Positions 4,801 through 52,700 of a DNA stretch of 64,000 bases are shown piece after piece. A model generated the notes under the pieces. That model saw nothing but the letters and a program-made list of their open reading frames with translations, did not search any database and was not told the DNA's origin. Source of the stretch: Trichoplax adhaerens (lineage: Eukaryota > Animalia > Placozoa); NCBI RefSeq assembly GCF_000150275.1, contig NW_002060950.1, positions 2,875,016 through 2,939,015 on the forward strand, given 5' to 3'. The position numbers and the translations under genes are program-made. Each line of letters opens with the position of its first letter. The stretch's first letter is position 1.

Positions 4801-7687
4801 TGACTAAATATAGAAACTCATTATAAATTATTAGATGGAGTTATATGATAATCCGTTCAGATTTAGATAAATTACTTTCAAATATTCATCATAATTACTG
4901 ATTAAGTTATAAATGATATTTAATGATATAAACGATGGATTATAATTCCTCGAAACTTAATGAAAATGCATTTAATGAGAGATTTTAACTTAGTATGATT
5001 ACTTCACATATACCTTATAACCTATCATTACATGTGATCTCTATAAAGAATAATTGTAATATGAATACAATTTATCGATATTTTGAAAGGGTAGGACTTT
5101 AAATAATCTATAATTATAATGCAATGATCAAACTTTTGTTTTATGTCTAGTTGATTTCTTGAATACATTTTATCAACTACGCCTTAAGATTTAGTAACTT
5201 TCTTTGGCTCTTTTTAATTGGACTTGTATATTCATAGTCTAATAACAAAACTAAAAAAATAGGGCATAAAGTTACTTATATCACGTTATCATTAATGATA
5301 CTAAATATACACCGTATTGCAGACGTAATCAGCCTTGACTCTTAAAAGAATTAATTAAATCGAATACTATATATGTAATCAACTGGACGAAAATTAACTA
5401 AATACTATTAATTCTTATGATCGAAGTTAGTATTAATACTGAAGGCCTCGATTAATGAAGTAAATATCAAAAGCAGTCTAACGAATGAAATGATTGGTGA
5501 TTATGTTATTATAATTATCGAAATAATTGTAATTGAATTTTAGGTATTAATCTTTTCGTGATAGTTTCCTGTAAGGCTGTAACAGTAAGATTAGTACAAT
5601 AGGGTTATGCCTTCTTTGGCGTCTTATATCCTCAACTAAATGATATTTGAGTAATAGTCTCATATTGTGATATGATTCTATATCTATCAGTAGTACCGCT
5701 ACGTAGTGCAAACAATATTAGAATAACATGCACCTGTTTCAACATAGTCTGGCTCTGTGGATATTGTAATAATACAATTACTGCTATTGTTACTATATTT
5801 CAAGTCAATGCAAGACTGTCATAATTGCTGATTAGCTAATAATAACGACTAGTTATTTTATTGACATTTTTATATTCCTGTCAAGTATAAAGATATAACT
5901 AACTTACTGTACTTGTGGTCAAGACATAAATAGAAGCCACATTTACATGTTATTGTAGTGGAAAAAGTTAAATCCAGATGAAACAATAACAAATAGGTAT
6001 TGCTTTTAGTATCCGTTGAGTTGATATTTGTTTTTACTATGATTACATCTGAACCTATTGTCTAATTTCCTTCACCTGTTCTTGTTGTCCTGGTATTTAA
6101 GAATTAGCTCAACATTTTGGTTTACAATTAATGGGTCTTCCATCAATGATCTAACTAAAAATAACACATCTGATAATTGATTTACATTTTGTAGATTGTA
6201 ATTTTTTAGCTCAGATTTATAGCAGATTTTAGCAGGAACTGAAGTGCAAAGTGATTAAATATTAGTGCTATTGACTTAACATCATCATCGTTACAGCCTG
6301 TCGTTATCATTGTATAGCTTCAACGTAATTTAAACTGCTTTTGGCTCAGGGTGGGGTGATTTTACACATAAGTAGTATAGCAGCATTTGCGCTACTGCAA
6401 GGTTGCTGACACGTATATAGATGCTATAAATTCATATAGTATATCATTTTTAGCTGAAATCCAATCTATGTTTTATAACAGCTAATATTGTTAATTCTTT
6501 AACTGATTTAAAATTTTTAAATTTTAAAAAGAAATTATTCCTGTAGAGAAATATTTAAAACTTATTATTACCTTTAGGTTAAACATCCTAAAAGTGATGA
6601 ACAGTTGGCTCGATTAAATAGTGCAATTACCAAAACCTTCGTTTTCAAAGCATTAAATGATGAACAACGTGAATTAGTTATTGACTCAATGTACGAGAAG
6701 TGTGTGGCTAAAGGTAAGAAATATTAAATATCAAAATCGGGATAATTGATGGCATGCATAGCTGAGCATCATACCGTCTTTATGAATAATTATAACAACC
6801 GCTTGTATATAGAATAAATGACCGGAAATTAGCATAATGTTATAATGTTACTCCATAATTTTATATCGTTATGTAAATAGGTTATGACGATAGTATCAGC
6901 TTTCTGTACTCATTCTTACTGTGGGAATTTTTGATACAGTGCACAAAGCTTTATCTAAAGTATATGAAACGATTTATTATCATTAGGAAATGACGTTATT
7001 CGTCAAGGCGATGATGGCGATAATTTCTATATTGTTGATGCCGGCATTTTTGAAGCCATTGTTAAACGAGACGGCAAAAGTGAAGTTGTCTTCAAATACG
7101 ATAATTCTGGTAGCTTTGGCGAGCTAGCATTGATGTACAATACCCCCCGATCGGCCACAGTGCGTGCTTCTACGGACGGTGTACTATGGACTTTGAGTGG
7201 TGAAATGTTCCGACAAATTGTCTTAAAAGCTGCTCGAAAGAAGAGGGAAGAATTCCGTAAATTGTTACAATCTGTAACCATATTGAAAGAACTGAGTACA
7301 TACGAATTGGAAAATGTTGCGGATGCGTTAATTTTAAAAAAGTATAAGAATGGTGAATGTATCTTTAAGGAAGGTGATCAAGCGTACGAATTATACTTTG
7401 TATTAGCAGGTGCGGTCGAAATCCGAATGCTTGATAAATCAAACAGACAAAGTGGCCAACAAGTAAAAATAACAGAGTGTCCAGTTGGCAGTTACTTCGG
7501 CGAACTTGCGTGGCTAAAAAAGGATCCTAGGGCAGCATCGGCCTATGCTCTTGGTAATGTAACTTTAGCTGAATTGGACGTTTACGCATTTGAACGTTTA
7601 CTCGGCCCTTGTCGCGAAATTATGGAAAGAAATGCCAAGGCATACGAAAAACCATTAATTGAGAAATTTGGCTCGTTGGCAATGTAA
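1856..7687 (+). CDS. PRKAR2: cAMP-dependent protein kinase regulatory subunit, type II-like; exons 1856-2011, 6578-6713, 6987-7687
   Basis: Exon 1 has the substrate-type inhibitor site RRLSISAE (Ser at the P-site, RII type). Exon 2 reads VKHPKSDEQLARL...FKALNDEQRELVIDSMYEK. Exon 3 has two cyclic-nucleotide-binding domains (IRQGDDGDNFY...FGELALMYNTPRSATV and FGELAWLKKDPRAASA). GT/AG junctions are phase-consistent (0, 1). The true 5' end is uncertain. Confidence 0.93.
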
Positions 7688-10773: not shown

Positions 10774-11391
10774 TCAAGCACTTCTAATCCAATCATTAGA
10801 TTTTGCCTCATATGCATCGTCCCAATCGAAAGAGGTCTTTTGCTGTTGCATAGAAGTACTGATCCAATTACTCGATTTTGCTTCATACGCATCGTCCCAA
10901 TCGAAAGAGTTCTTTTGCTGTTGCAGTGAAGTGCCTGCCCAATCATTCGATTTTGCTTGATAGGCATCGTCCCAATTGAAAGAAGTCTTTTGCTGTTGTG
11001 AAACAGGCCCTACGAAAGCGTTCGATTTTCCTTGATAGGCATCATCCCAATCGAAAGAAGTCTTTTGCTGTTGTGAAGCAGGCCCTACTAAAGCGTTCGA
11101 TTTTCCTTGATAGGCATCATCCCAATCGAAAGAAGTCTTTTGCTGTTGTGAAGCAGGCCCTACTAAAGCGTTCGATTTTCCTTGATAGGCATCATCCCAA
11201 TCGAAAGAAGTCTTTTGCTGTTGTGAAGCAGGCCCTACTAAAGCGTTCGATTTTCCTTGATAGGCATCATCCCAATCGAAAGAAGTCTTTTGCTGTTGAA
11301 CAAAATTACCTAATGCAGCATGTGAAAGGTGTCTAGCAAAGCCGGTTGAAATTATGTAAGCGTACCATATAATCATTACCTTGCCCCACAT
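10774..11391 (-). CDS. Secreted repeat peptide (neuropeptide-like) precursor, 205 aa, 7 copies of QQQK(T/N)SF(D/N)WDDAY(Q/E)(G/A)K
   Basis: ATG at 11391. Signal-like N-terminus MWGKVMIIWYAYIISTGFA, then seven 25-aa units (last one 24 aa). Four units end YQ-G-K (Gly amide donor plus basic cleavage site). Single exon. Confidence 0.85.
   Translation of the reverse strand: MWGKVMIIWYAYIISTGFARHLSHAALGNFVQQQKTSFDWDDAYQGKSNALVGPASQQQKTSFDWDDAYQGKSNALVGPASQQQKTSFDWDDAYQGKSNALVGPASQQQKTSFDWDDAYQGKSNAFVGPVSQQQKTSFNWDDAYQAKSNDWAGTSLQQQKNSFDWDDAYEAKSSNWISTSMQQQKTSFDWDDAYEAKSNDWIRSA
10777..11298 (-). repeat. Coding tandem repeat, 75-bp unit x7
   Basis: The first three units are identical in protein and near-identical in DNA; the units diverge progressively toward the 3' end. 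Confidence 0.95.
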
Positions 11392-11497
11392 ATTTGCTAA
11401 AAATGCTGATTTACTCCAATTCAAACCTGAAGTTATAAAGAATCGCTGTTATGAGTGTGGGTTTAAGCTAGCTAATCAAGTCAATCAATAAGTTTGT

Positions 11498-11505
11498 CTT
11501 ATATA
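11498..11505 (-). promoter_or_regulatory. Possible TATA box (TATATAAG) of the WDDAYQ precursor gene
   Basis: Lies about 110 bp upstream of the ATG on the coding strand. The AT-rich background makes this weak. Confidence 0.3.
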
Positions 11506-14063
11506 TGCTTATTTTATGTGGTAGTTAAATTAAAATTATACCAACGATTACCGATTACGTCTTTTATTCATATTGATATAATATGGTCTTGTTAATAGAA
11601 TTAAGTAATTGCAAAGTTCAATCTTAATGACAATTAGAATAGAATATAACCTGTTCACAAGTTGTAGTATACTCAAATACGAGGATAATGTAGATGATGC
11701 GTTTAGCTGAATAAATGGACGTTTTTAGCAGGCTTCATTTAGTGCTGCTATTTCTATGATCTTAATCTACATTGTTTACCGTCCAAAATTAGAATTTTAG
11801 ATGTTAATCAAAATACTATTTGTAGCATTGAATAAGCATTCTTACAATAACTAAATATCTAATTATGTATTGCTCATCCAATAATTAAGTTAGCTAATTG
11901 CTAGTTACTTATGTAAGATATTAGTCAATATTACAGAATCTCGGTATTTTAGTAACATAATAGAAATATAACATGCTTCCATCTGGTTAACATTGATATT
12001 AAATCTAAATCTAAATATAGCTGATTAGCTTAATTTTAAATCTTCTTTAAACAAAGATATTCTAGTTAATTGTGAATTTTAAATATTTATTAATGCTTCA
12101 AATATTACGTCTATTCCTAAATGTCCAGTTATATATATTATATAGGATTTTCATTCAATTTTAATTTAGATATTCACTCCGGAGATAATTTCATTATTGA
12201 GTTACGAATTGAGTCGTTTTGATTTTTGTACTATGGAGAATTTTAGTACAAGTTAAATTCATAAACAAATTTAATCGCATAAACATCTGCTCTCGAAGAT
12301 AACCGCTACAAATCAGTTAACGCTTGGTATTTGAAGTACTACATATGCTTCCAATAATTTTTCAGCATGTAACTACACTATTCTTAGTAATCATGTAAAA
12401 TTTAGTTTTAGTTGGGCAACCCAGCTGTAAATTGAGTCGCTACTTCAGTTTTTCCTCAGCAATACGTTATAAAATTTTGATACTAATCAACGCCAGTTGC
12501 CATAATGATATATGATATATGTATATTGATAGCGATATCTTTGTGCGGTTAAATTTGTTAATTATTATATTGCACCTTTCTAGGGCTGTAACTGTGGACT
12601 AGGAATAAAGTTATGAGTAGCTCTATGACCTCATGTTTCATTCTCGATCCATAAGTATAAAACATGACTTCCTAGTAGATCTAAACACTGAATCAGACCT
12701 AAATTGTCCATACCTATAAGCTTAATGAAATTATGGTCAAATCTTCTTTAAAATCTGATTGATCATTTCGTAACTAGATTAATCAATGCGTAGGATTACC
12801 GTGTCCTCTTATAAAGATGAAAATTAATATTAGCTTGCTTACTTGCTTGTTACAAATAAGGAAGCTGATCAAGGATTTACTGATGTGTCCAAGTACTCAT
12901 GCCTTGATTATAATTTTTAAGCTACCCTGTAACGATGAAAATTGAAATTACTGTACCTTGCAAATTATAAATAGGAGCAGTAGATCAATATTTTAATAAT
13001 TCTTCGCATTACTAATAACTTGATTACTATGCCACTTAGCAAACATGAAAATTGAAATTCGCTTGTTTACTGTAAATAAGAGAAAACGGATTAACATTGC
13101 GGTATCTTTTCGTATCAATCTTTTATCTTGTCAGCTACGAGTGAGATGATGTTTTCATGATATCATCCAAATTTTATTCCTTCTAGTCATTATTACCGTA
13201 AGTATTAAATTTCAAATGCTATTCCACTAAGTATAAGCGAGAGACTTTGATATCAGCATATAAATCTTAAATATTACTAATTTAGAAACTATAAAGGGGT
13301 AAAGATATCACAAACCCTGTAACAAGTAGAAACTTAGACCAGGAGCAGCAAAAATTATTAATGCCTGTTACCAAGATGTATTGTTACTGAGCTTCATAAT
13401 GATATAAATTTAATACTCCCTGGCTATTTAGCTCCTCAGGAATTCTAGTAATAGATAAATAGATGGATCTATTGATGGTTATAATAGACCAAATTTATAA
13501 TACCACGCGTTTATTTCTTAGCCATTATACATCTCCAATTCACTATGATGAAGAATATGAAGACACTGCAGTTAATTGATAGAAAGCATCACTGACTATC
13601 CGTGTCTGATCTTCAAAATTAATTATCCTAAACTCTATCATAGCATTATTTGTTACTATTTGCTTACTTAAGAATTAGTATCAGTGAGTTTGAAGTAGAT
13701 TAAATGTTTAATTCTTGAATTTATTCATAAGCGGTCTCATATCTCTAATTAAATAGAGCGAATGATATAATTAATACTAAGGTACCGTATGGAAGACTTT
13801 TTTAACGGAAAGTAATCGAAATTTTATATCTACATCCAAGATTTAGTGTGACTGAGCTCGATATAGCGCAGATCTATTACCTGCATCTTTAAGATTAGGC
13901 ATCAAAAGATTTCATGATAAATCAGTTTATAACGTCCTGAAATGCTGTTTCACTGCCAGATATCTTCAATTTAATACTGTATCTGCATATTTAGAGATTA
14001 TTATCAAAAATTTCTCACAAACTATATAGATACAAGATTAGGGATTTATTCAGGAGATGCATC

Positions 14064-14101
14064 ATGGACTACTAGATATACCTGTACATCTAGTAGTCCA
14101 T
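14064..14101. repeat. Short palindromic element, perfect 14-bp arms ATGGACTACTAGAT/ATCTAGTAGTCCAT
   Basis: Perfect inverted repeat with a 10-nt loop. Related elements occur at 25922-25962 and 34175-34215. Confidence 0.75.
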
Positions 14102-15561
14102 AGCTGCAGCTCACATATAATTCAGAGATATGAGCATGGGTAGTTACTGTTACTAGAAGAAGAAAATAATACCTAAACGTATTTCAATACACAGTTACCA
14201 CGGCATCATTTACAACGCTCTACCGTGGTATAATCATGCAACATATTAATCTTGGTATTAAAATGTAGATACACTTTATTTAATGCTATAGTTTGTTAAG
14301 CACCGTTGTCATAATTTTAAATTATGAGGATCAAAGAGCTACTAAATTACACAATATCTAAGTCCCAAATTTACCCAATATGGTACATATCAGGAGATAG
14401 GCTAAACTATGGACCCTGTGGATGAAGATTTTGATATAATTACGGTACTTGTTCAGACTATTGCTCAGTAGTTATTGTCTAATCTTTTAAATATGTTGAT
14501 AATGCAGATATACTCACTACTAATTCCATGCAAAACTATGAGTTTTCAAATACGATCATAGAATTACTTATTATACAAAATTTAGCTAACTCTGTGTTAC
14601 TTTAAATAGAAATTTGCCAGAGGATTTTCATCTAGAGTTAAGCTAAACGTTGGTCATCTATGCTTTTTGCCTGTAGCTCATGTATAAGAAAAATAGAGCT
14701 ACTAATTATTGTATTGAACTATGAGTCCATAGAAATAGTGAAGCAACTGTTATATACTATTATTAAAATGTAGTCTGTGTATAAAAAAGGTGCTAATAAT
14801 TACTGTCTAGAATTATAAATCTATTGAAAATGTAGAAAGTATAAGATATTACGAAATTGCTCTTCATGGTTAAGGAAAATGGGTACTGCTCTAATTATTA
14901 TCTTGAACTGTAAATCTATGGATAATAAGTAGAAAATGTTCAATATTATTAAAGTTATAGCGTCTAGACATGCATATAGTTCATCATTTCCTAGGCGAAA
15001 TCTTAATATCTTCAGCATTTCAATATTAACTTTCTTCCACAAATAAAAATTATCAATCTTTGTTGTGTTCACAAGCTACATATTTATTGATGATTAATGG
15101 TAGGTTTAAACGCCACTGATATAACATACGATATGTACGCTAGTTTAAAGATCGCAAAGCATAATATCATACTAATAGCTTTTGCTAGATGTTTATCATC
15201 TCTAGCGAATGCTTACGCAAATATTAGTCGTTAAACATCACGTAGAGGAAATACAATATGGCTATTAGTATAATTTAATACAGCTACTTCATAGAGTTAT
15301 GATCGACTAGCATAAAGAAAGGAAATATAGGTTATGTGCTATCATCATCTTTAACAACCACTAATACTTAAGGCTACTAAACGTATGTGGCTTAAGAAGA
15401 GCCCCAGAGTCTAAATAACACGATGGAAATCAAATACTATTGAAATTATTTTGGGAATAGTGTCAGGATTAGTTAGTCTAGTTAGTTGTCCATCATGTTT
15501 CTGATATAAGTGAGCCAGAATTGAATCTAGCATAAGGGCCTATTGCTATATTATGTTTTAA

Positions 15562-16080
15562 TTACCCAGAATAACTTTGAAGCAATTTAGCTAGGGGAGC
15601 ATAGCGTTGTGGATCTGTACGCATTAAAAACGTCAAAATCTGGATGATTTTATCACAACCACAGTTTGATTGGAGCAATGGGGTACCAGGTCCTCTTGAT
15701 TCAAGCAATGGTGTGCCAGGTCCTCTTGATTCAAGTAATGGGGTACCAGGTCCTCTTGATTCAAGTAATGGGGTACCAGGTCCTCTGGATTCAAGCAATG
15801 GTGTACCAGGTCCTCTGGATTCAAGCAATGGTGTACCAGGTCCTCTAGATTCAAGCAATGGTGTGCCGGGTCCTCTAGATTCAAGTAATGGGGTACCAGG
15901 TCCTCTGGATTCAAGTAATGGAGTACCAGGTCCTCTGGATTCAAGTAATGGTGTACCAGGTCCTCTGGATTCAAGCAATGGCGTGCCAGGTCCTCTCGAT
16001 TCTAGAGCAAGGGGAACTGCAAATGCAAGGTCGTGGGAAACGAGCAAAGTAACCATCAACATACACAAGAGCTTGGCCAT
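15562..16080 (-). CDS. Secreted repeat peptide precursor, 172 aa: signal peptide, 10x GPGTPLLESR + 1x GPGTPLL, Cys-containing tail ending in Gly
   Basis: Signal peptide MAKLLCMLMVTLLVSHDLAFA (A-F-A cleavage motif), pro-piece VPLALESR, repeats invariant in protein with only synonymous DNA variation, and a unique C-terminus QSNCGC...LLQSYSG-stop. Confidence 0.85.
   Translation of the reverse strand: MAKLLCMLMVTLLVSHDLAFAVPLALESRGPGTPLLESRGPGTPLLESRGPGTPLLESRGPGTPLLESRGPGTPLLESRGPGTPLLESRGPGTPLLESRGPGTPLLESRGPGTPLLESRGPGTPLLESRGPGTPLLQSNCGCDKIIQILTFLMRTDPQRYAPLAKLLQSYSG
15673..15993 (-). repeat. Coding tandem repeat, 30-bp unit x ~10.7
   Basis: Plus-strand unit GATTCAAG(C/T)AATGGNGTRCCRGGTCCTCTN repeated head to tail. 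Confidence 0.95.
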
Positions 16081-19470: not shown

Positions 19471-22400
19471 TTATTTCTTTACGTAAGAACTATAATGCCT
19501 TAAGGCAGCTAGACTGTCTTGTAATGGATTTAAGTCACCATCTGTGTCTTTGGTATCATTAATTCGCTTTGCATATCCTCGCATTATCAACGTGTTTTCG
19601 ATTTTGATAAGCGATGATTCTTTGGTGACTTGTAACTGAACATCATACGTACCGTCGTTAGATATCGAAATAAATCTGGCTTTTAAGTTTCCTAAAGTAA
19701 CTAAATTCCGAAAGGAGGAGATTGATTCCGTATTCCATTCGCCGTCTTGCAGCGTTCCTATACATTTATGAAGGCTACATTGCATGGCTAACGGAGGTAC
19801 AGGATCGGATTCATTATAATTTGCTCCAATATCTGCAAGACTAATACAATCAGTGGTACCATAGTCAATATTGAGCACAGCTGCTTGCTTATTTGGAAGA
19901 AGTCTCATGATAAGACCACGATACCACCCACTACTTTGGGTGCCAATAAAGTATATCTTTCCAACAGAAATACCTTTGTGCCCAACTGTTTGCATAGCCA
20001 CCTTCATGTTTTCTAGATAATGTTTATTCATTTGTCCAGTTTCATCACAACAATGCAACCAAAATAATCCTGGATTGATAATATTAGTAACTTCCACTTT
20101 AATTAGATTCTCAGAAGATAGTAGATTAGCTTGATTTATAGGTAATAATGATTCTTTTATCATTCTGTGGAAGCTATGGATCTTACAAAGAAATCTATGA
20201 GAATCCCAGTTTAACTTACACAGATTTTTCTCAACTAATATTCGATTAATATTAGTTAAGCCATTCTCATTATTAACAAATAAATCAATATGATAGTTGT
20301 ATTCATCTCGTAAAATTATTTTTGCTTTTAATAAGACGTTTACATTTAAAACTAATCCTTTAAACCAATCAACTATATCAGGGACCCAGCTTTCACAATT
20401 ATCTGGATTGGTAATTCCATATAACGTGCAAGGATAGATGGAAGCATAGGATTGTGCAACTGATTTGAACAAGGGTTTAATTTCGTTCAAATCAATAGTT
20501 TGCACAATCCCTTCATCAACACAGTGTATTTCAGCATTCTCGTTACCAATAGTATCAATTATTACGCGACGCCAATGTTCGGCAAAAAATGCACTATAAG
20601 CTTTGCCACATGATAGCTCATTGATATTAACAGACCTGACGTTCTTGCTGTATCTTTTGTCCATAAGATCTCTTATGTCACTATATTGTTGTATTTCACG
20701 ATCAGGTTCCAACGATTTGACTAGAAAATAGTTTGGGTTTACAACATCGGTAATAGCTATGTCTATTGTTGCACTGACTACTAGTTCCTCATAACTTAAT
20801 GAATCAATACATTCGTTATCGGTATCTGTACTTGCCTCTTCGAGATTATTGTTACGATTACTTAATATAGGTACATTGGTAGATGCAGTATTTTGACCTC
20901 GAGTTGAGATATTATGGTCCTCCGTTTCTATAATATTTTTGTCCATTGATGGAACAGTTTCTTTCAAGTTAGGGTGTCCAGATGCTGCTGATAGTGAGCT
21001 CTGGGTATTGCTCAACTGTTCACTTGTTGAGCGAATAGATTGTAATTGATTATCCGTAATATCCAATTGTAGCATTGTAAACTCTTTTACTTTGTCTTTA
21101 GCCATTAATATGTTGCGAAGAAATTCCGAATTTTCAACGTTGAGAAAGGCATAACGACTTCTACTCACTTGCTCATTTAAACTTTCTTGTAAATTATCAG
21201 GTAAAAAGATAATAACTTCAATTTGATTGCTAAATTTTTCATCAATAACAACGGCATATAAATGCGAGGCTGTATCGAGAAGTGCAGCAAGATGTCTTTT
21301 GCCTTCGATTCTTGCACTACCATCTAATGTATCTGTTCCGTAAAGCTTAAATGGATAAGGACCAGATTGTGTGTAATGTAAATATTCAGGCAGTTTATAG
21401 AGAGAATTTAGGTTTACATTCTGGATACTACCACCAGAATCTATGAAAGCTACAGTAGTGACAGTATCCAACGCTAGCACACGTACTCTATGCAGTTTGT
21501 TTGTAACCACGCCATATATTCGACCTACTTTAACTTCGTTACTATTTATTTTTACCCAACATTTCGATGGGTATATAGAACCGACAATATCACCCAGCTT
21601 GAAAGCCTCAGAACTAATTTTTCCCCAAAAGGAACATCCGTCATTACACCAGGTAGCAGCTAGTGGAAGTACCATGCTATCTTTATTCGAGCTATTAATT
21701 GTGGGATAATTAAAGTCGTTATATGATAGATTGTCGTGAACATGAGGATCAACACTTTTATTGTTATTTCCAGTTGTAGCTCTGGATAAGGCAATTTTCT
21801 TTTTGGGAGAATGCCTTGCTTTATTACTAGGCGCTTCATCATTCGAAAACAACGAATTGTTAGTATCTGACGTTTGGTGTGCATCGACAGTGCTTCTTTC
21901 CATACTTCGGTGTTTACTGGATGTTTTACGGTGATCGATCTTTCGTACATCAGATGTTGAAGATTCGTAGCTACTAGAATCTGGATATCCATCGTTGATA
22001 CTAGATGAACGCAAGCTTCTTGTTATACTATCAGTAATATCTTCAGAGGTCAATTTGCCGTCAATTTGACTATCAACTTGCTTTGCATCCTTATTTAAAG
22101 GAGTATTATTTAAGTCACGCCTTGCATCGATAGATTTGCCTGCAATATAAATTTATAAGATAGCAAGATTTAGCATAAGAATTGCCGAATGCAGTTCAAG
22201 TATCACAATTTAAATCACAACTTACTAGATGCATTAATTAACACAGACGATCGCCAAGAGGTATTGTTTCTGGTATTTGTGTCACTTTCCATTTCATCTA
22301 CTTGTACATTATTTGTAAAATTTTTTGCAGAACTGTTAGATAGGCTCATTTCTGAAGCAAATCTGCTTAAAAATTTCTCAAATACACGATGTAATTTTTC

Positions 22401-27293: not shown

Positions 27294-27566
27294 TCTAATT
27301 TGGATCGATTTGAAGCGATCGATTGCTCTACAAGCAGGCAATCGGCAATAGTAAAAGTAAGAAAGAAAATGAGTCCAGGGTTTTTCCTAGTCTAATTTGG
27401 ATCAATTGGAAGCGATCGATTGCTCCACAAGCAGCCAATCGGCAATAGTAAAAGTAGAAAATGAGTCCAGGGTTTTTCCTAGTCTAATTTGGATCAATTG
27501 GAAGTGATCGATTGCTCAACAAGCAGCCAATCGGCAATAGTAAAAGTAAAATAGAAAATAAGTCAG
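27294..27566. repeat. Tandem repeat, ~95-bp unit x3
   Basis: Units start TCTAATTTGGATC at 27294, 27391 and 27483; each contains GATCGATTGCTC and CAATCGGCAATAGTAAAAGT. Confidence 0.9.
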
Positions 27567-27862
27567 ATTGAATTTGCTACCGATAGTCACACAGAGATTA
27601 ATTTCACGGTGTGAAGAAGAGTAGCAGTTTCATCATTCCCCAATAACTTGTCCAGTTGAAGAAGAACAGTGAAGATGCGAGCCACCAATTTAGCCAGGTA
27701 ATGGCGGAGCGCAAAACGGAAGAGTTACAACACGCTAACACTAGTGACTGACTAATCGATTCATTTATGGCCGGCCGGACGGTAGGACAGCAGTCCACGA
27801 TAGTAGTGGACTCTGCTGCCCAAGCGTATAGTGTACAGTATGGCGGTACCGACGCCATTCAG

Positions 27863-29598
27863 GTGTGAACAAGGCCAGTGCAAAATCTATGTCATTTTAC
27901 AATAACTTTTTACACAAGCAAGAGATGACAAATCATTTGGCAACCGTGAGTTGCCAAATGAAACAAATGGGTCTCTAATAACTCACCATATTTTGGATAT
28001 CGTGTACAAGAAACTTGAATGAATTTCCATAGCGATACAAGCAAGTTTCCAGGCATTTTCAACCTTCTATTTCTGTTTGGTCATCATGGCTTTGTCTAAT
28101 TCTAGCCATACGGTATATGGCCCGTTTATTATAATACATCTTAGAAATGCTGACGGAGGCACTTTGTTGGCGTACAGACGCCAATCAGGTATGAACAAGG
28201 ACAGTGCATAATCCATGTCATATTACAAGGACTTATTAGACAAACAAGGGGTGACAAGCCATTTGACAAGCGTGAGTTGTCCAAGAAACAAATGGGTCTC
28301 TCTCTACATCTCACCATATTTTGGATATCGTGTACAAGAAACTTGAATGAATTTCCATGGCGATACAAGCAAGTTTCCAGGCATTTTCAACTTTCTATTT
28401 CTGTTTGGTCATCATGACTTTGTCTAATTCTAGCCATACGGTATATGGCCGTTTATTATAATACATCTTAGAAATGCTGACCCAAGCACTTTGTTGGCGT
28501 ACAGACGCCAACAAAGTGTGAACAAGGCCAGTGCATAATCCATGTCATGTTACAAGGACTTATTAGACAAACAAAGGGTGACAAACTATTTGAGAAGCGT
28601 GAGTTGTCCAAGAAACAAATGGGTCTTCAACTCACTGGATATCGTGTACAAGGGACTTGAATGGATTTCAATCGAGATACAAGCAAGTTTCCAGGCATTT
28701 TCAACTTTCTATTTCTATTTGGTCATCATGACTTTGTCTAATTCTAGCCATACGGTATATGGCCGTTTATTATAATACATCTTAGAAATGCTGACCCAAG
28801 CACTTTGTTGGCGTACAGACGCCAATCAAGTGTGAACAAGGCCAGTGCATAATCCATGTCATGTTACAAGGACTTATTAGACAAACAAGGGGTGACAAAC
28901 TATTTGGCAAGCGTGAGTTGTCCAAGAAACAAATGGGTCTCGAACACCTCACCATATTTTGGATATCGTGTACAAGAAACTTGAATGAATTTCAATCGAG
29001 ACACAAGCAAGTTTTCATGCATTTTCGACCTTGTATTTCTGTTTGGTCATCATGACTTTGTCTAATCCTAACCATACAGTGCATGGCCGTTTATTATTAT
29101 TATAATACATCTTAGAAATGCGGACGGAAGCACTATGTTGACGGACAGACACCAACTTGGTATGAATAAGGCGAGTGCGTAGTCGATGTCATCTTACAAC
29201 CACTTGTTAGACAGACAAGGGGTGACAAATCATTTGGCAATCCTAGTCGTTAAAGAAAGAAATGGCTCTCCAACTCACTGGATATCGTGTACAAGGGATT
29301 TGAATGAATTTCAATCGAGATACAAGCAAGTTTCCATGCATTTTCAACCGTCTATTTCCGCTTGGTCATCATGACTTTGTCTAACCCTAACCACACATGG
29401 CTATTTATTATAATACATCTTAAAAATGATGACGGAAGCACTTTTGTTGGAGGACGCCAATTAGGGATGAACAAGTCGAGTGCAAAATTAATGTCATCTT
29501 ACAACAACTCGTTAGACAAACAAGGGGTGACAAATTATTTGGCAGCCCTAGTCGTCAAAGAAAGAAATGGGGTCTTCAACTCACTGGATATCGTGTAT
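27863..29598. repeat. Tandem array, ~305-330-bp unit x ~5.5 (copy A)
   Basis: Unit starts G(T/G)(G/A)TGAA(C/T)AAG at 27863, 28189, 28517, 28830, 29160 and 29466. Confidence 0.92.
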
Positions 29599-30373: not shown

Positions 30374-33300
30374 GTTTATCATTCCCCAATAACTTGTCCA
30401 GTTGAAGAAGAACAGTGAAGATGCGAGCCACCAATTTAGCCAGGTAATGGCGGAGCGCAAAACGGAAGAGTTACAACACGCTAACACTAGTGACTGACTA
30501 ATCGATTCATTTATGGCCGGCCGGACGGTAGGACAGCAGTCCACGATAGTAGTGGACTCTGCTGCCCAAGCGTATAGTGTACAGTATGGCGGTACCGACG
30601 CCATTCAGGTGTGAACAAGGCCAGTGCAAAATCTATGTCATTTTACAATAACTTTTTACACAAGCAAGAGATGACAAATCATTTGGCAACCGTGAGTTGC
30701 CAAATGAAACAAATGGGTCTCTAATAACTCACCATATTTTGGATATCGTGTACAAGAAACTTGAATGAATTTCCATAGCGATACAAGCAAGTTTCCAGGC
30801 ATTTTCAACCTTCTATTTCTGTTTGGTCATCATGGCTTTGTCTAATTCTAGCCATACGGTATATGGCCCGTTTATTATAATACATCTTAGAAATGCTGAC
30901 GGAGGCACTATGTTGGCGTACAGACGCCAATCAGGTATGAACAAGGACAGTGCATAATCCATGTCATATTACAAGGACTTATTAGACAAACAAGGGGTGA
31001 CAAGCCATTTGACAAGCGTGAGTTGTGCAAGAAACAAATGGGTCTCTCTCTACATCTCACCATATTTTGGATATCGGGTACAAGAAACTTGAATGAATTT
31101 CCATGGTGATACAAGCAAGTTTCCAGGCATTTTCAACCTTCTATTTCTGTTTGGTCATCATGACTTTGTCTAATTCTAGCCATACGGTATATGGCCGTTT
31201 ATTATAATACGTCTTAGAAATGCTGACCCAAGCACTTTGTTGGCGTACAGACGCCAATCAGGTGTGAACAAGGACCGTGCATAATTGATGTCATATTACA
31301 AGGACTTATTAGACAAACAAGGGGTGACAAACTATTTGGCAACCGTGAGTTGTCCAAGAAACAAATGGGTCTCTAACACCTCACCATATTTTGGATATCG
31401 TGTACAAGAAACTTGAATGAATTTCAATCGAGACACAAGCAAGTTTTCATGCATTTTCGACCTTCTATTTCTGTTTGGTCATCATGACTTTGTCTAATCC
31501 TAACCATACAGTGCATGACCGTTTATTTATTATTATAATACATCTTAGAAATGCTGACGGAAGCACTATGTTGACGGACAGACGCCAACTTGGTATGAAT
31601 AAGCCGAGTGCGTAGTCGATGTCATCTTACAACCACTTGTTAGACAGACAAGGGGTGACAAATCATTTGGCAACCCTAGTTGTTAAAGAAAGAAATGGCT
31701 CTCCAACTCACTGGATATCGTGTACAAGGGATTTGAATGAATTTCAATCCAGACACAAGCAAGTTTTCATGCATTTTCAACCTTCTATTTCCGCTTGGTC
31801 ATCATGACTTTGTCTAACCCTAACCACACATGGCTATTTATTTACTGTTAAATGAGCACATTATCGTAAACCGTCAGCAAAGCGACGGGAGCTTGCACTA
31901 GTACATCTTAAAAATGATGACGGAAGCACTTTTGTTGGAGGACGCCAATTAGGGATGAACAAGTCGAGTGCAAAATCAATGTCATCTTACAACAACTCGT
32001 TAGACAAACAAGCAGTGACAAATGATTTGGCAGCCCTAGTCGTCAAAGAAAGAAATGGGTCTTCAACTCACTGGATATCGTGTATCCTTCCGTCGCTTTT
32101 TACCCGAAATTCCGCCTTGTCTAGACTAGCAACAGTATGGAAATGGCGAGATTTCGGGTAAAAAGAGGGACGGCGACGAAGGAGGGAAAGTTGCCTAGTT
32201 CCTAGCGTCGATTAGTCCAGTAGAATACCCAGCGCGCGTTACTTGAACTCTACTGTACTGTACTGTACACACGTTTTTCTTCATACTGTACCTCAAGGGT
32301 GCTCTAGTCTGAAGACTATAAAGTTGGAGGGATAGTCTGTGAAAGGATTGATTCTAGTCAGAAGACAAAAATAGAGTTATGAACTGAAATAAAATATCAG
32401 TACTGTACCCGTACATATTGTACAGTATGGTGGTCAGGGACGAAAAGAAAGAAAGATGGATATGCCAGCGCAACCTTTCTGCTTTTCTTCCTAGATGCGT
32501 GTAACGGACAGACAACTTCCCAGAAGCGCTACACTACTGATCTAGAGAATGGAATCCATCCCTGATATACAGTACTGTACAGTAGGACTGAGTACAGTAC
32601 ACTTGCGAACTACTGTACGTTTTAGATAAATCAACGCTAATGTTTTGCGACATTTTGTGAACGAAATTCATCAAAATTGTTATGTGTGGAAAGAAGAAGC
32701 TCTCATAAACATGCCTGTATAATTTATTTTTGTGAAATAAATGATTTCAATTCGTTTTTTCACGATTTATGGTGTACCGTTATTCTTGTAAAAATCGCCA
32801 TTGTACAGTACTGTATTGTATTGTAACTGTAGCATTTCTAGCAGTCTATCCAACAATACAGTACGCATACTCGTACTTCAAATCAAGGGGGGAATTGCAT
32901 AATATCCAAAGGTATTTCCTTCATTTTCCCTTAAATTATTCAATAAATTCAATCAAAACTTCAATAATGAATTGATTAATCGAGCACTTGCAAGGCAGTG
33001 GATGCAAATAATATGCAAGGCTTGTATAGAACATCCAATATTCTCCATCCAAGGAGTTTCTCAACGGTTGCTATGCTATCGAATACAAGACAAACGCTAG
33101 TGGCAATTACTTCTATTCGAGTTCGAAATTTCAAAGTACTGCATTGGGATCAGGGATGACCACAAATTGTCGCGGACCTTCACGGTAAATAGGAATAGGA
33201 AAGCACAGAGTTGGCATTGGCAATAGAGCGCAAAGATAAAAAAAAAAATTTAAAATAAAAGTAGCCATGTGATGGAGGTGCGGGAAGAGGAAAGGGGGGG

Positions 33301-35333: not shown

Positions 35334-38300
35334 TCAACTTGAATACACTATGTATTCTGGGTAAGCAGCGTTATCGTGAAATACCACAAAAACAGAGTCA
35401 TTATTTTCGTTACGAACTGAATGGAGATTTATAGTCTGGCTGCCTTGTATGGTACCTAAATTGGGTTGACTTCTTTCGGCTGGTTCTCCGAAAATACCTG
35501 TCAAAACGCGTGCTATTATAATCACTGGACCATATACTTTAGCTACTTCAGCACTTTGGGTAAAATAAGTTCCAATACCCAGTGCTGCACCTGATTAGAA
35601 AGAAAAATTCCGTCAGCATAAATTATGTTATTGCTATGAGATCGAATCGATATCAGCTATGTTTGTCTATTATGTACCATTAGATTTTCCTGAATAATCT
35701 CTGTTAAATCCTGCTTGGCAAATTCTATCGATAAAATTAAGCTGGGTACCATGAAATAATTGCCTTTCTACAATCGTCCCTGGCTGATATTCATCAACTA
35801 TTTTAGCTACATCCATCTTCATTAATTGATAGCGTTGATATAAATTCCAATTTTGTACTCGTTCCACTTGTGTTACTTCGATATTACTATTTCCTAGTAG
35901 ACTATAAATTTCTGCTAATTCTATTGCAGTGGTTATTTCTACTCGATTCTTTCTTCCGTCTTGGATCTCATTAATATTGTCGTATTCCCAGTCGCCAGGT
36001 ACACTTATGCAGTCTACTTATAGTAGTTGGCAGAAAAAAGAAAGAATATATTTTTTGAATATGATAACATTTACATGTATCGCATAATTGCACAGAATTT
36101 ATAGTAAAATAAATTGAATTTATACCTGGATAATTTTTTCTAATTACATATGTACGATTGCTATTTTGCAATGTCAGATTCATCTGTTCAAAATTAACCA
36201 CCTTGAGTTCACCACCTATACAAGCCGTTTGACAAAACTTCTTGTCTTTTTGATAAAGTTGGTAATATTTTTCAATTTCGTAATTTAATTTTTCGTCAAA
36301 TGGATAATAAGAATGACCTATTTTCATCTGCCATGGTGCTATTTCATACGTAAATTGTTGCAATGTATGACTAGCTTTCTCTTGTAAATTGCGTTGTATT
36401 TTTTGATAGAGATCTATTATCGTACAACAAACATCTTCACTAATGCCATATATGGTAATAAATGAATATTCTTGGCTAGATTCTTTAATTAAGACGGTGC
36501 CATATTTATTCCACATATTTAATTTCAAGCTGATCCAACTGTGATCTTCTAAATTTGTAAGGTGTTCAACATCTGTCAGTGTTTTGCATGCCAACGATGG
36601 CATCAGTTTATACATTTTCGATTTTATCCGTCGGATAGTTTCACGATCTTTTGCTGCAATTGCAATATCAATATCTAATGGCTTACAACAATAATCTTGA
36701 AAAATGATCCATTTATAATATGAAGTAGAGCTACAATTAATCATTCGATTTCGTATCCATCTTGTCATTTCCAGGCATCGATACCAGTTAATCATGACAA
36801 ATTCAAGGCGTTGCAGGTTCTTCGTTAAATGCTGTTGTTGCACAAATTCTTCAATTTTACTTATTAGTAAGCCAATATTCTTCTCATCTGTTTCATTTCC
36901 AAGAAATGGGATTGCTAAAGAGCTTACTTTAGCTCTGTTAACGTAATTTAACAAAGCATCAAAGTTTTCCAGCATTCCATATGGGCATGCCTTAATTACG
37001 ATTGGGTCTTGAGAACAAATACTAACTCCATGCAGTCCTTGAGGCAACGACTGATTACTATTGCAATCAGATCCATGAAATTGGAAATTAACTGCGTAGC
37101 CATCTAGATGACTTGCACAAATTTCTATTAAAGATAATAAAGCTTTTGCATGGGAATGTTGGATTGATCCCTTGTAAATATCAAGAATTAATATCTGCTG
37201 ATCTTTAATACAACATCTTGCGGAATAAAGTAGAGTCAATTTACCACCATTTCCTTCGTTCCGGATAGCTTTTGATTTTATTGCGTTATTAATAAGATCT
37301 ATTTCTGATTTTACATTAAGTAAAGCTTGCCTAAAGGCAGTATGATGATCGTTTAATGAGACAGTAACATAAATAGTCTTTAAACTAGTTTTAAGCGAAT
37401 TTTGAAGGGCAAATTCCTTAGCAGCATCGATCATTCCTCGAGCAACCTCCTGGATATGGAGGCCCACATTCCCAGCTCCAATTGGAGGTATCGCAATAGA
37501 TGTCATTAAATTGTCGTGAGCTATTTTGATACACTGATTAATTTTGTCAATAAGCCACTTAAATAGAAGAGAAAGAAAATAATAAATGAGCCAACTCTGA
37601 AATTTGTACGACTCAGTAAGCAAAGTGATAAATCATTATTTATAATAGAATAGTATTTAGTTACTATTATATCTACCGGTAATTTTCTGTTTGAGCTTAG
37701 AAATGGAATATGATAAACTGCCTTGCTTTGAAAATAACTACCATCCGTTATACCAATCTTGTCTAGTGTTAATTCTGCTAGATTTGTATCGCAGTCATTT
37801 TGGTAGGCTTGGCCACCTGCGCGATATAATAATTTTGCAAGTTTCCCTACACTGTAAGATCCGAGCTCTATAGAGTTTATAATGACATCTGCCTATAATT
37901 GGATATTTAGTTTAGCAATCCTGTAGTGGTATAAGAGTTATTATTGACTTTACTATATGTAAATATTAGCTTCATCTTAAAAGCAACTAACTTTAATCTT
38001 TTCCAGGGCTCCGCGAACGATTTTAATAGTGATTTCGTTAATTTTGATTTCATCAAGGGTGTTTCCCAATTTCGATTCAGCAGCCTTTTCTAATCTAGTT
38101 ATCAAAAAGTTATCATGGCAATATTTGATAGTGATGTTGATGCAGTTCAACGAACAAGGCTGGTAATGATTAATAATTCTAATTGTAAATTTAAAAATCC
38201 TATTTCTAGTAGCAGCAGATTTGACTTGAATTCATGCTGTAATTACCTATTTTGGATTTTGAATAGTTCATGCTTTATGGATATCCTAGATGTTAATAAA

Positions 38301-40060
38301 ATGAATTTGATGCACATGAAGCCGATATTTACTACTTATCTGATAAATTAGTCATTTAAGTGTTGCTCCAACATTAGCTTGTAATTTAACATCAAACTAA
38401 AAAATCAGTCTAGAGAATAAATTGGCGTAGTAGACTACCAGAATTTCGACGTAGAGAAATTAAAAAGGGTATATTTTGAATCAGACGGATTCAATTAATC
38501 TAAAAATTTTGAAATGTACTTGACATTCATATTTGGTTATTATACATTGGTAAATAAACTAATTAATGTGATGTATAGCTAAGAATAGAAATTGTATAGG
38601 AGATCTTATTGCAGAGTAATTTGGTATTCTGAGATAGATAAAGATACACCAGATTTATAGACGATGAAAACGGTGTCAGATAATATTTTGCTAGCCTTTA
38701 GAACTAGTTAATATTTAGGAAGCCTCTTTTATTGCATTAAAATTATAACTTACGAATGTAGAGATTGGATATCGCTTTTAATTCGGATTGTACACTGGAA
38801 TTCTTTTTGAAGTGATTCGATAAATATTTTTCTCCTAGCTCTATTTTGGAGATATCTACTCAAGCTTGAAAATCTGCTAATATTCCAGTGTTCTTCGGTA
38901 GTAATATCATTGAAAAGTTTAGAAATCTTCTCCTTGACTATTCCTTGATGGCATATTGGGCAATGAATTGTGACTTGCATTTTGCCATAGGCTTCACTAT
39001 CAATCAGTTGATTTTCAGCTTGGGGATTAAATTCAATACCCGAATCACAATGATATTGCTCTAATAATTTCTTGAACCTTTTCTCTATATATGATTGCAC
39101 ATAATTCATCTTTAACGCTGTTAATTCTAGCGTGATAACCGTTTTTATATTGTGATATCTATTTATTCGCTCAGTAAACTTCATTAGAACCTGATATACG
39201 TCATAGTCTTTTCCAGTAACTGTAATCATACATGATTGAAAGTTATTGTCTACTTTCATTTTTGAATAAACATTTTTGCATTCAGATATTCCATTAGTCA
39301 TTTCCTTCTCGAAGACTTGTAAATCTCGTGGTAGATACAGGTTTTGATCTCGTACTGTTAGCGATTTGGTAATAAAGACAGTGGATAAATATCTGATAGC
39401 TGTGATATACTCTTCCTTATCAACGGCGCTAATGAGAATGGATTCATTAGATAGGATAATACTGGCCTTGATATTCATGCTTTGGAAATCCTGATTAATC
39501 TGATCCCTTTCGCGTTGATGACTAGCCAAAAAAGTCATGATGGAATCGGACAGGATTTCGCGATCTTGTAAATAAGTTCAAAAATGCACCTTATATCTTT
39601 CATACCGTAAATTGTTTGTCATTTCCCTAACTAAAGCTACAGTCAAATCGATTCGCTTAGCGACTTACTTTGTAATTGTATCTGGGAGAAACTGAAGTTG
39701 CACTTGGCTTTACTTGCATCCTCTACTTCATTCTTTCGCTCGGATTGATTTATCGATATTGTCCACTTTGGATCTTTCTTAACTTGGTTAGCCGGAATGC
39801 ACCCAAATTCAAGATAATCATCTTTCGAGATGTAACTATTAAATAAATCTGTATTACATGTATTAGTATGGGCAATATTTGCTTTTAGTAGATGCGAATA
39901 TTTCCCTGATCTCAAGAATTTTTTGGCTGTAAAGAAAATTTAAGCCTTATACTTCTTCGAAATATATTAGCAATATGTGATAGCCATCAACAAAATTTCC
40001 CCTTACCTGATGATGGTATAGGAAGATTAAACCAAATATGTTTCCCTTCTAGTGGCATAG
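35334..40060 (-). CDS. PARP14: PARP14-like macro-PARP paralogue 1 (KH-like region, macrodomain(s), WWE, ADP-ribosyltransferase domain); 5' end unresolved
   Basis: Exons include ~39927-39669, 39564-~38754, ~38095-37992, ~37891-37678, 37557-36126, 36013-35678 and 35590-35334. Macro motifs ADVIINS...AGG and SIAIPPIGAG; WWE WQMK...PFDEKLNYEIEKYY; catalytic ERVQNWNLY...QLFHGT...GFNR...GTYF...ARVLTG...AYPEY. The symbol denotes the PARP9/14/15 family, not proven orthology. Confidence 0.85.
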
Positions 40061-49700: not shown

Positions 49701-52700
49701 AGGTCGAATGGATTGGCCTAATTCCATATCTTGATATTTATTCTGTAATTGCTGCTTCGATATTTCGCTTACGAAATGCTCATATATGTGAAATAGAAGA
49801 ATAAACTAGAATTTGGTATCGTGTGACCACAAACTAAATTATAACATTTCGCTATACAATTTAGAAAGGTACTGGCCTTGAAGCATTTGAATAAGGCTCA
49901 ATGTAGATGTACTCTTGCTATTGTGAAAATATGTAATATTCCTACATCAATGAATAAGGTCAGTTAAGCTATCTTATTTAGTTTTTAATTAGGATCTCGG
50001 TTGTTGTGGGTTTCTTCATGTTAATATCATTTTAATCCAAATTTAAATGAAACGTTACGAAGATCGAGCTCTATCATTTGGTTAGTCAAGGAGGAATCGT
50101 TATTGAATTGAAGACAATTCCGCCTGATCAAGCGTAATGATTTATAGCTATTTTATTAATAAGTACCGGCGTATGAATGCCATAGATCTTAATTAGCTCT
50201 CAAGCCATATAGACTACTCGTATAGCTGATAGTTTTAGCTAGCTGAGTAATCTTCCATATAAAACGTATTTTTTAACTCTAATTATAAGATGCTGATCTT
50301 CTATTTTAAATCACTAGAACAATTGCAACTATACAATTGCGTATTAATAACCTTAGTTACTAGCTTACTTAAATTTAACTATCCTTCCTAATACTCTATT
50401 CATTTGTACCAACAAACTCATTCTATGCACATTTTTCTGTCTATCCTAGGAAAGTAACTTACCGCTGTCAAGCTGATGCTATTATAGCATTGATATGCTT
50501 AGACCAATTTGAAATTTGTACCGACCAGCCGATAAATATCCAATTTGAAGGTAAAGATTCTAAATTTATGTATGACGAAGTCTTTCGAATTCGAAATCTT
50601 ATTCAAAAGCAGCAGAATGAAAGCAATTTATTAGCATTACAACCGGATACAAGTTCTCCATTGCCATCTAAGTCAAGAGAGACTGCAAGTACCAACTTAC
50701 AGTCTTCTTCACTCCGTTCTTGTTCCAAATCGAGTACCAGCTCAAAAAAAGGTCAGAAAAAGGATCAATTTGCCAATACTAAGAATGGAGATGATGGAAT
50801 CAGTCAAATTGAGAAAATTGCTCAAGACAGTATAAAGCAGAAAATAGATGGCAGAGGCAAATTAAATAAAAGTAATAGTAACCGAAATGGAAGAAATACC
50901 GGGGGTAAAACAGCAGCTATTAAAATAGATCGAAGCTATAAAGGTGACCAAACATTTAGCAAAAATCAGAATCAAGGAGGAAGACAAGATTCTTATCCAT
51001 CTAGCAGCAAGCTGTCTCCTGTAAAGCCTAAATCCATGATCTCTAAGCGTACGATCGGTAGTGACTGTGCGAAATTTTCAGTATCAACGAAGGCAACAAT
51101 TGAGGAAGAATATACTTTTTCGGATAAAGCTTATTTTCTTATGCAAAAAATTAATCTGGAACAAAGAATTAAGGATAAAGGCTACGAAGTCTCTTTCACC
51201 TTTAGGGATAGAGAAGATGGCGGTAAATTACTTGCAAGGATGATAGATGGTAGTCAAAGTTACATTATGAAGGAATTATTTGATTTTTTTAACTTAATGG
51301 ATTCCAACCAAGATTTACCTACTAGAATATGCAAATATCTAGCTCAACAGACCGAAATGACGGATAGTATTAACAAGAAATTAATTGAAAATGGTATATG
51401 TGCTGTAATTATTCCAACCAACACGAATGCTACTATTTCTGTCATTGCAAAGAATGCGACAGAATATGAAAAGGTTACGGCGGTATTGTTAGAAATTTTT
51501 GACACTAAATCAACAACCGTATCTGGTGAAGCTTTCTCTTTTCCACAAGATACCGCTATACTTCTTTCTAGTATTCAGCAAGATATTGCCATGAGTAGCA
51601 AGCTCCTGCTAGAAGCTGAGCTAAATGATTATACTAGCTCTTGCACCATAACAGTTACAGGGCCTCGTAATAATCTTCATGATGTCATTAGAGCTATTCA
51701 AGCTAAATTAGAAGAATACAAATTGATAAAATTTGATATTACGGATACTCCTGTTTTGAAAACAGAATATTTGCGTACGTATCTAAAAGATAATATTCGG
51801 TCAATAGAAAAGATATTTGGCTGTCGAATTGAAGTGGAAGCAAAACTGGATAGCGATTCTTGGCTCATGGAACGTTGTAAAAATATTAGCATCAGCTGTT
51901 ACCAAATCTATAAAAATACTATTGAAAACAGAATTCGAACAATTTTACGAGGGATTACCGTGCAAAAGGAAGATGGTATTAGTAAATATTCGCTCACTGG
52001 ACGATTACTTAGCTCTAGTAGAAATAAAGCTAGGTTACAACGCTTACAAGAGGAACTACACTGTTTGATTGCCATTGCAGGGAATAAAGGCGAAAGGTAC
52101 CTATACTTTACGCGTAGATATGATTATTTGATAATAAAGATCTATCTTGAAGCAGTGTTTCTATTTCATTATAATGAATTTTACGCTGATTGGTTGGAAT
52201 ATTATTGAGGTTAAAATGAAAGTACGGGGAAGAAAATTAAATGAGGTTACCATAATTGCTTATGGAAACAAAATTTAGCCTAGATAAGAGTTGGCATGTA
52301 TAGTAAATTGTCAGTTTTTACTGATAAAGTAATATGTGACAAAAAAGATATCATTAAAGGCTAAACAAAATTAAGGGGAAGAAAAGTAAAAAGGATCACT
52401 TGAGTGCTTATGAAAACGAAATTTAGCCCTAAAATAAGAGTTGACAAGAAGAGTAAATCGCCAATTTTTACCGGAGTAACAGTCCCGACTGTACTCCTAG
52501 TTTAGAGTATACCGGGGTAGCTTCTAGTCTAGCCTATTTTATACCCTGGAGTATAATCTAGGTCAGGTTACACCTCCTCACCCCCTCTTACATACAAATA
52601 TATCAAGTAATCGATATATCACTTCGTAGTAAATCGATTACAATATATTGCCTGATATGATTATTGAAAAATTATCAAAGGCTAAACGAAATGAATGTAA

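Follow-up and report, generated by a model that had tools for sequence, protein, structure and literature searches.

Two neighbouring candidate peptide-precursor genes without shared sequence in the placozoan Trichoplax adhaerens

Introduction

Placozoans have endocrine-like cells rather than neurons and coordinate their behaviour via secreted peptides. Here, we analysed a 64,000-nucleotide stretch of the Trichoplax adhaerens H1 genome (hereafter the window; contig C1407:2875016-2939015, in an assembly of 105.6 Mb and 1,414 contigs) that contains two neighbouring open reading frames with tandem peptide repeats, ORF A and ORF B. We found that they are two separate single-exon genes for small, secreted and largely disordered tandem-peptide proteins, most likely regulatory-peptide (prohormone-type) precursors, a reading that we hold with moderate confidence.

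The RWamide precursor, which carries pQPPRWamide in many DQPPRWGR units, offers the fullest comparison. Like the pair, it combines a signal peptide, a short pro-piece and many identical units within one exon, and it is closely grouped with precursor genes to which it is unrelated. Cleavage takes place at a single Arg, and the N-terminus is processed at Asp or Asn. As in ORF B, this single Arg per unit is the sole basic cleavage residue, and the units differ from one another only synonymously. However, RWamide units have a Gly before the Arg (the amidation signal) and an Arg at P4, both of which ORF B lacks, and the sequences are not similar. Moreover, fragments of the RWamide precursor have been seen by mass spectrometry and its cells have been mapped, which sets it apart from ORF A and ORF B.

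Other described precursors resemble the pair in single traits. SIFGamide (pQANLKSIFGamide), whose internal Lys is kept uncleaved in pQANLKSIFG, matches one possible reading of ORF A in its Gln start after a non-basic residue, its intact internal Lys and its Gly followed by a basic residue; yet its cleavage site is the dibasic Gly-Lys-Arg, whereas ORF A has Gly-Lys alone, and the sequences are unrelated. YYamide (epitope GYDDYYY-amide) is acidic, aromatic and amidated, as predicted for the ORF A product, but shows no alignable similarity to it and is encoded elsewhere (C1410:3627064). Cnidarian multi-copy neuropeptide precursors, according to the Grimmelikhuijzen model, undergo N-terminal processing at non-basic residues and have single basic C-terminal sites. 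Their peptides are protected at the N-terminus by pyroGlu or X-Pro, and ORF B units start with Gly-Pro, but these precursors have no sequence relationship to the pair. Within the present genome, identical peptide units with synonymous DNA variation are encoded by the genes for RWamide, WPPF, SIFGamide and FFNPamide, which favours a precursor reading of the two new genes.

Results

The initial annotation of this locus described two intronless, co-oriented repeat-protein genes 4.2 kb apart that share an architecture but no sequence, and this description holds. ORF A (positions 10774-11391 of the window, minus strand; 205 amino acids plus stop) and ORF B (15562-16080, minus strand; 172 amino acids plus stop) are complete single-exon coding sequences and candidate secreted multi-copy peptide precursors. 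Both were found as open reading frames and both are called as genes in Trichoplax sp. H2 (GCA_003344405.1); ORF B additionally has a homologue, P0001. The two ORFs, as well as P0001, begin with a signal-like segment that has a hydrophobic core and small residues at -3/-1, as judged by inspection and Kyte-Doolittle hydropathy, without SignalP. The signal-like start is followed by tandem units in both genes. As also claimed originally, basic sites are exclusively monobasic: neither protein contains a dibasic pair, and each unit carries two Lys in ORF A and one Arg in ORF B.

Despite the common layout, BLASTP returned no alignment between the two proteins even at E<=100. We considered a common origin of the two genes and rejected it, given the absence of protein similarity and a similarity between flanks that stayed within chance; the DNA downstream of the two genes likewise shares nothing beyond chance. 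Neither gene has a paralogue in its own genome, Joint Genome Institute (JGI) metagenome scans for homologues returned nothing, and Pfam matches amounted to sub-threshold repeat noise (Aegerolysin, HipA N-terminal domain and Spt5 CTD repeat), which we discarded.

ORF B provides the clearest signature of selection on a peptide. Its signal-peptide-like N-terminus (16018-16080, minus strand; 21 amino acids ending in A-F-A) has a Kyte-Doolittle value of 2.82, is modelled by AlphaFold2 (AF2) as a helix over residues 2-19, and recurs in the homologue. After a partial unit follows the repeat array (15664-15993, minus strand), which unit alignment resolves into ten GPGTPLLESR units and one GPGTPLLQSN unit; Tandem Repeats Finder (TRF) places eleven 30-bp units at 15674-16002. 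Among the ten full units, the DNA varies at 5 columns, all of which are third codon positions and all of which are synonymous (p ~0.004). The protein closes with a 33-residue tail (15565-15663, minus strand) that starts with C-x-C-D, is predicted to form a helix-turn-helix, includes a conserved DPQRY and ends in Y-S-G, a possible C-terminal amidation site judging from its sequence.

The homologue P0001 (115 amino acids) was the sole match of a word-based search and lies on a 593-bp European Nucleotide Archive (ENA) metagenome contig, presumably of placozoan origin. It has the same start and stop, a signal-like segment ending in A-Y-A, four full units plus a terminal Q-S variant, and a tail that retains the Y-S-G end with its terminal Gly. 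Comparing the units of P0001 and ORF B revealed no change in 49 aligned residues, against ~35 nucleotide differences in 147 nucleotides, with Leu and Arg even drawn from different codon families. The rest of the protein is far less constrained: 14 of the 33 tail residues differ, the signal peptides can hardly be aligned, and the number of units is 5 in P0001 and 11 in ORF B. Across the two lineages, GPGTPLLESR is identical in 15/15 full copies.

The last ORF B repeat is directly followed by N-C-x-C-D (within 15565-15663), which is kept in P0001. A similar N-N-C-T-C-D follows the repeats of the published FFNPamide precursor, and the Hoilungia FFGQamide precursor has C-L-C. Such C-x-C-type motifs after the repeats may be a common element for sorting or dimerisation, or coincidental.

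In ORF A, selection is visible as a contrast within each unit. Its signal-peptide-like N-terminus (11335-11391, minus strand; 19 amino acids with a hydrophobic core and G-F-A before the predicted cut) reaches a best 9-residue Kyte-Doolittle mean of 2.02 and is followed by a 12-residue pro-piece. The array (10777-11298, minus strand) comprises seven 25-residue units, detected by TRF at 10799-11298 with a period of 75 and each exactly 75 bp long. A unit consists of a 14-residue core, QQQK[T/N]SF[D/N]WDDAY[Q/E], then [G/A]-K, then a variable 9-residue spacer. Units 1-4 are near-identical in DNA and have a Gln run and Gln-Gly-Lys, an amidation-type site; units 5-7 are diverged and have Ala-Lys; the 75-bp register is kept throughout with no insertions or deletions. 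In the core (first 14 codons), the proportion of nonsynonymous differences (pN) was 0.03-0.08 and that of synonymous differences (pS) 0.16-0.63, compared with a pN of 0.21-0.42 and a pS of 0.34-0.71 in the spacer (codons 15-24). The resulting pN/pS ratios are ~0.1 for the core and ~0.5-0.85 for the spacer, all based on small counts. A TATATAA that matches the consensus of a TATA box, and may be one on that basis only, lies 114 bp upstream of the ORF A start codon (11499-11505, minus strand).

Could one or both ORFs be mere minisatellites whose period, a multiple of three, keeps a frame open? The periodicity does leave several frames open across both arrays, and ORF A lacks a homologue outside Trichoplax. 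We nevertheless consider this very improbable. The variation of ORF B is synonymous-only in one frame, and its diverged homologue keeps start, signal segment, units, tail and stop. ORF A, in turn, shows the core-versus-spacer selection contrast and has an ATG and a signal-like segment outside its repeats, and both genes are annotated in H2. Taken together, the synonymous-only variation of ORF B, its conserved units in P0001, the contrast within ORF A and the H2 annotation establish that both are real genes.

In both ORFs taken together, constraint is strongest on the peptide units and weaker on the spacers, the signal peptide and the tail. From this pattern we infer a peptide-precursor function for both genes. 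Their build is also that of known placozoan precursors, in which a signal peptide and a short pro-piece precede many copies of one short, most strongly constrained peptide, with spacers and copy number that vary. The cut at a single Arg in RWamide and the intact internal Lys of pQANLKSIFG are precedents that fit. Both proteins would enter the secretory pathway via the N-terminal signal peptide and be cleaved where each unit has its single basic residue; the N-termini would then be trimmed or converted to pyroglutamate, with amidation where Gly precedes the basic residue. Units 1-4 of ORF A are predicted to yield ~4 copies of an acidic aromatic amide ending in ...FDWDDAYQ-NH2, whose first residue would be pyroGlu from the Gln run or the residue that follows the internal Lys, and units 5-7 three non-amidated variants. 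ORF B would release ten copies of GPGTPLLES, which its Gly-Pro start would shield from aminopeptidases, and perhaps also the Cys-containing C-terminal tail as a 33-residue amide. The peptide-precursor part of the initial proposal, a small peptidergic or secretory locus, fits the pattern of selection. The proposed non-dibasic processing system is no novelty, since the RWamide precursor is already known to be cut at a single Arg.

Several observations weigh against this interpretation. In neither ORF A nor ORF B does the single Lys or Arg have a basic residue at P4, P6 or P8, and the ORF B units have no Gly before the Arg. Prohormone-convertase monobasic sites usually need a basic residue at one of these positions, and a single Lys is seldom cleaved. 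No homologue of ORF A was detected beyond Trichoplax H1/H2 in an exhaustive search of 1.84 billion representative proteins, nor by word-based protein search. The former returned six weak, repeat-driven matches, including P0007, on a 3-kb metagenome contig. The best of the six, P0003, has a similar 25-residue period, and we rejected it as a homologue as it lies on a dense bacterial contig. No peptide of either protein appears in the accessible part of Table S5 of the 2023 mass-spectrometry study of Trichoplax H2 and Hoilungia H13 (PMC10580291), which covers 53 H2 and 52 H13 precursor genes and whose peptide search was tied to the authors' gene models. Finally, the Evolutionary Scale Modeling (ESM) Atlas model of ORF B is beta-roll-like (predicted TM-score, pTM, 0.65), with an RTX-like structural neighbour.

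Some of these observations lend weight to an alternative in which both genes are real and their products act intact as secreted repeat proteins, whether mucus-like, adhesive, elastomeric, or defence- or ion-binding. GPGTP could be O-glycosylated, and the acidic DWDDAY could serve in cation binding or be sulfated on its tyrosine. The lack of dibasic sites and of basic residues at P4, P6 or P8, the missing peptides in that part of Table S5 (PMC10580291), and the Pro/Gly-rich composition of ORF B with its Thr-Pro and RTX-like neighbour would all suit such proteins. We consider this alternative rather unlikely, for the following reasons. The AF2 model of ORF B (pTM 0.21) shows no solenoid: the repeats are disordered, with a per-residue confidence (pLDDT) of ~40 and no strands, and only the tail is helical, as a helix-turn-helix at moderate confidence. 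The two predictors thus disagree on this perfect-repeat protein, and we rejected a beta-roll or RTX-like solenoid for ORF B as unsupported by AF2; the ESM Atlas model of ORF A has low confidence. Structural repeats usually tolerate substitutions, whereas the ORF B unit is invariant in its full copies from two lineages while tail, signal peptide and copy number change. Only 20% of the residues in the ORF B unit are Ser or Thr, and the Gly-Lys sites of ORF A fit amidation.

We then asked how the two proteins relate to described placozoan precursors, and the regulatory-peptide reading remains our preferred one in what follows. Neither shows any likeness, by peptide strings, to the published families SIFGa, FFNPa, RWa, WPPF, ELPE, LF, TaELP, PWN and YYa; the sequences of SITFa, MFPF and LFNE lay outside this comparison. 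Their peptide strings were also not found in the placozoan literature searched, including the precursor list of PMC11452194.

The arrangement of the pair on one strand, 4.2 kb apart with nothing between, raised the possibility of a co-regulated peptidergic locus, expressed in the same cell type from shared regulatory DNA. In Trichoplax sp. H2 the gene order is the same: a Tudor-domain gene, ORF B (172 amino acids, identical), ORF A (205 amino acids) and a cNMP-binding gene. The DNA of H2 and H1 is nearly identical, so that the H2 gene calls attest to annotation rather than deep conservation and lend co-regulation weak support. In the comparison of upstream regions put forward in the initial annotation, the two 1-kb regions share no 9- to 12-mers beyond shuffled controls and yield no significant local alignment. 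In addition, published work assigns the clustered RWamide, WPPF and FFNPamide genes to distinct cell types or metacells, and co-expression of amidated peptides has never been observed. As these three genes are clustered yet active in different cell types, clustering does not imply co-expression and, by analogy, proximity would not predict co-expression for the placozoan precursors considered here. Overall, we regard co-regulation of the pair as distinctly unlikely. An attempt to extend the microsynteny toward a distant placozoan, with the Tudor exon as query, retrieved H1 and H2 proteins only.

Whether such genes cluster beyond chance was a further check proposed in the initial annotation, and the answer differs between the pair and the genome. 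Over 264 kb (200 kb upstream plus the window), ORF A and ORF B are the only ATG-initiated ORFs with a signal-like start and tandem peptide repeats. If 53-100 such genes were placed at random over 105.6 Mb, 0.14-0.5 pairs would be expected within 5.3 kb. As a lone pair, the adjacency of ORF A and ORF B is within chance if the genome has 50-100 such genes, which counts against our interpretation of the locus.

To place the pair in a wider context, we located seven known precursors with short degenerate DNA patterns, each of one peptide unit. RWamide (C1410:2292326-2292709, plus strand), WPPF (C1410:2300862-2301481, plus strand) and FFNPamide (C1410:2313768-2317089, minus strand) fall within 24.8 kb, which for three of seven located genes has a chance probability of ~6e-6. 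YYamide maps to the same contig (C1410:3627064), 1.3 Mb from this group; SIFGamide lies on C1401, the endomorphin-like peptide precursor on C1388 and PWN on C1403. The ELPE and LF patterns had no match in the genome, perhaps owing to introns that split their units. The group within 24.8 kb makes clustering of unrelated precursor genes look like a general property of this genome, into which the pair of ORF A and ORF B fits. We found no description of clustered placozoan peptide-precursor genes in the accessible literature.

One feature of the FFNPamide locus deserves separate mention. Its units recur about every 132 bp, compared with a published coding unit of ~10 amino acids (30 bp). This spacing suggests one unit per micro-exon with short introns between.

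The surroundings of the pair agree with the original statements that no evident gene separates the two and that no modifying enzyme is encoded nearby. The 4,170-bp spacer (11392-15561) holds no ORF longer than 83 amino acids and none that looks coding; it contains no Rfam family and no tRNA, and no gene is called between the two ORFs in the H2 record. Its DNA is single-copy except for a ~59-bp palindromic element (14054-14112) with 83-95% copies on contigs C1402 and C1410, which may be a small dispersed inverted-repeat element. Convergent with ORF A lies an exon of a cNMP-binding, PKA regulatory subunit-like gene (7130-7687, plus strand). Upstream of ORF B, on the same strand, lies the large last exon of the Tudor-domain gene TRIADDRAFT_58757 (19471-22053, minus strand). 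Both genes were assigned from the ORF list and the H2 record. Among these neighbours and several macro-domain-like ORFs, which we judged by eye from the ORF list, we recognised no processing or modifying enzyme.

The window as a whole has a G+C content of ~32%, and its ORFs are sparse. Two arrays of a 314-327-bp tandem repeat with 85-86% matches occur at 27841-29584 and 30587-31817, on either side of an assembly gap (a run of N near 30.3 kb); a 92-bp repeat array adjoins, and 27294-27548 belongs to this repeat region as well. Two sets of large ORFs, at 35971-39538 (minus strand) and 50490-55259 (plus strand), appear by eye to be paralogue-like and in inverted orientation: those of 550 and 496 amino acids share a macro-domain-like start, and those of 262 and 572 amino acids have a similar C-terminal part.

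Discussion

ORF A and ORF B are probably new members among the placozoan peptide precursors. The apparent clustering of unrelated precursor genes is, in our view, a more interesting lead than the verdict on this single pair. The grouping would more likely reflect genes that arise and are replaced locally than common regulation. A bolder version of this idea, which we regard as unlikely, assigns the origin and turnover of signalling-peptide genes in placozoans to local genomic 'nurseries', in which coding minisatellites that come to lie behind a signal peptide would give rise to unrelated precursors side by side. On that account, and with as little confidence, ORF A could be seen as one such gene caught at its birth: it occurs in Trichoplax only, and its four near-identical, recently amplified units have Gly-Lys, whereas its older, diverged units have Ala-Lys.

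Every further precursor supplies one more candidate signal, which is also a candidate ligand for the many orphan receptors of placozoans. Confirmation of the two genes would bring in two kinds of peptide with unusual monobasic sites: an acidic aromatic amide, and a Pro-rich decapeptide under strict conservation between placozoan lineages. That unrelated precursor genes lie so close together and are nevertheless expressed in separate cell types is relevant to the origin of new signalling peptides. Were the nursery idea true, this tight grouping would be a hitherto undescribed principle by which a pre-neuronal peptidergic system is organised.

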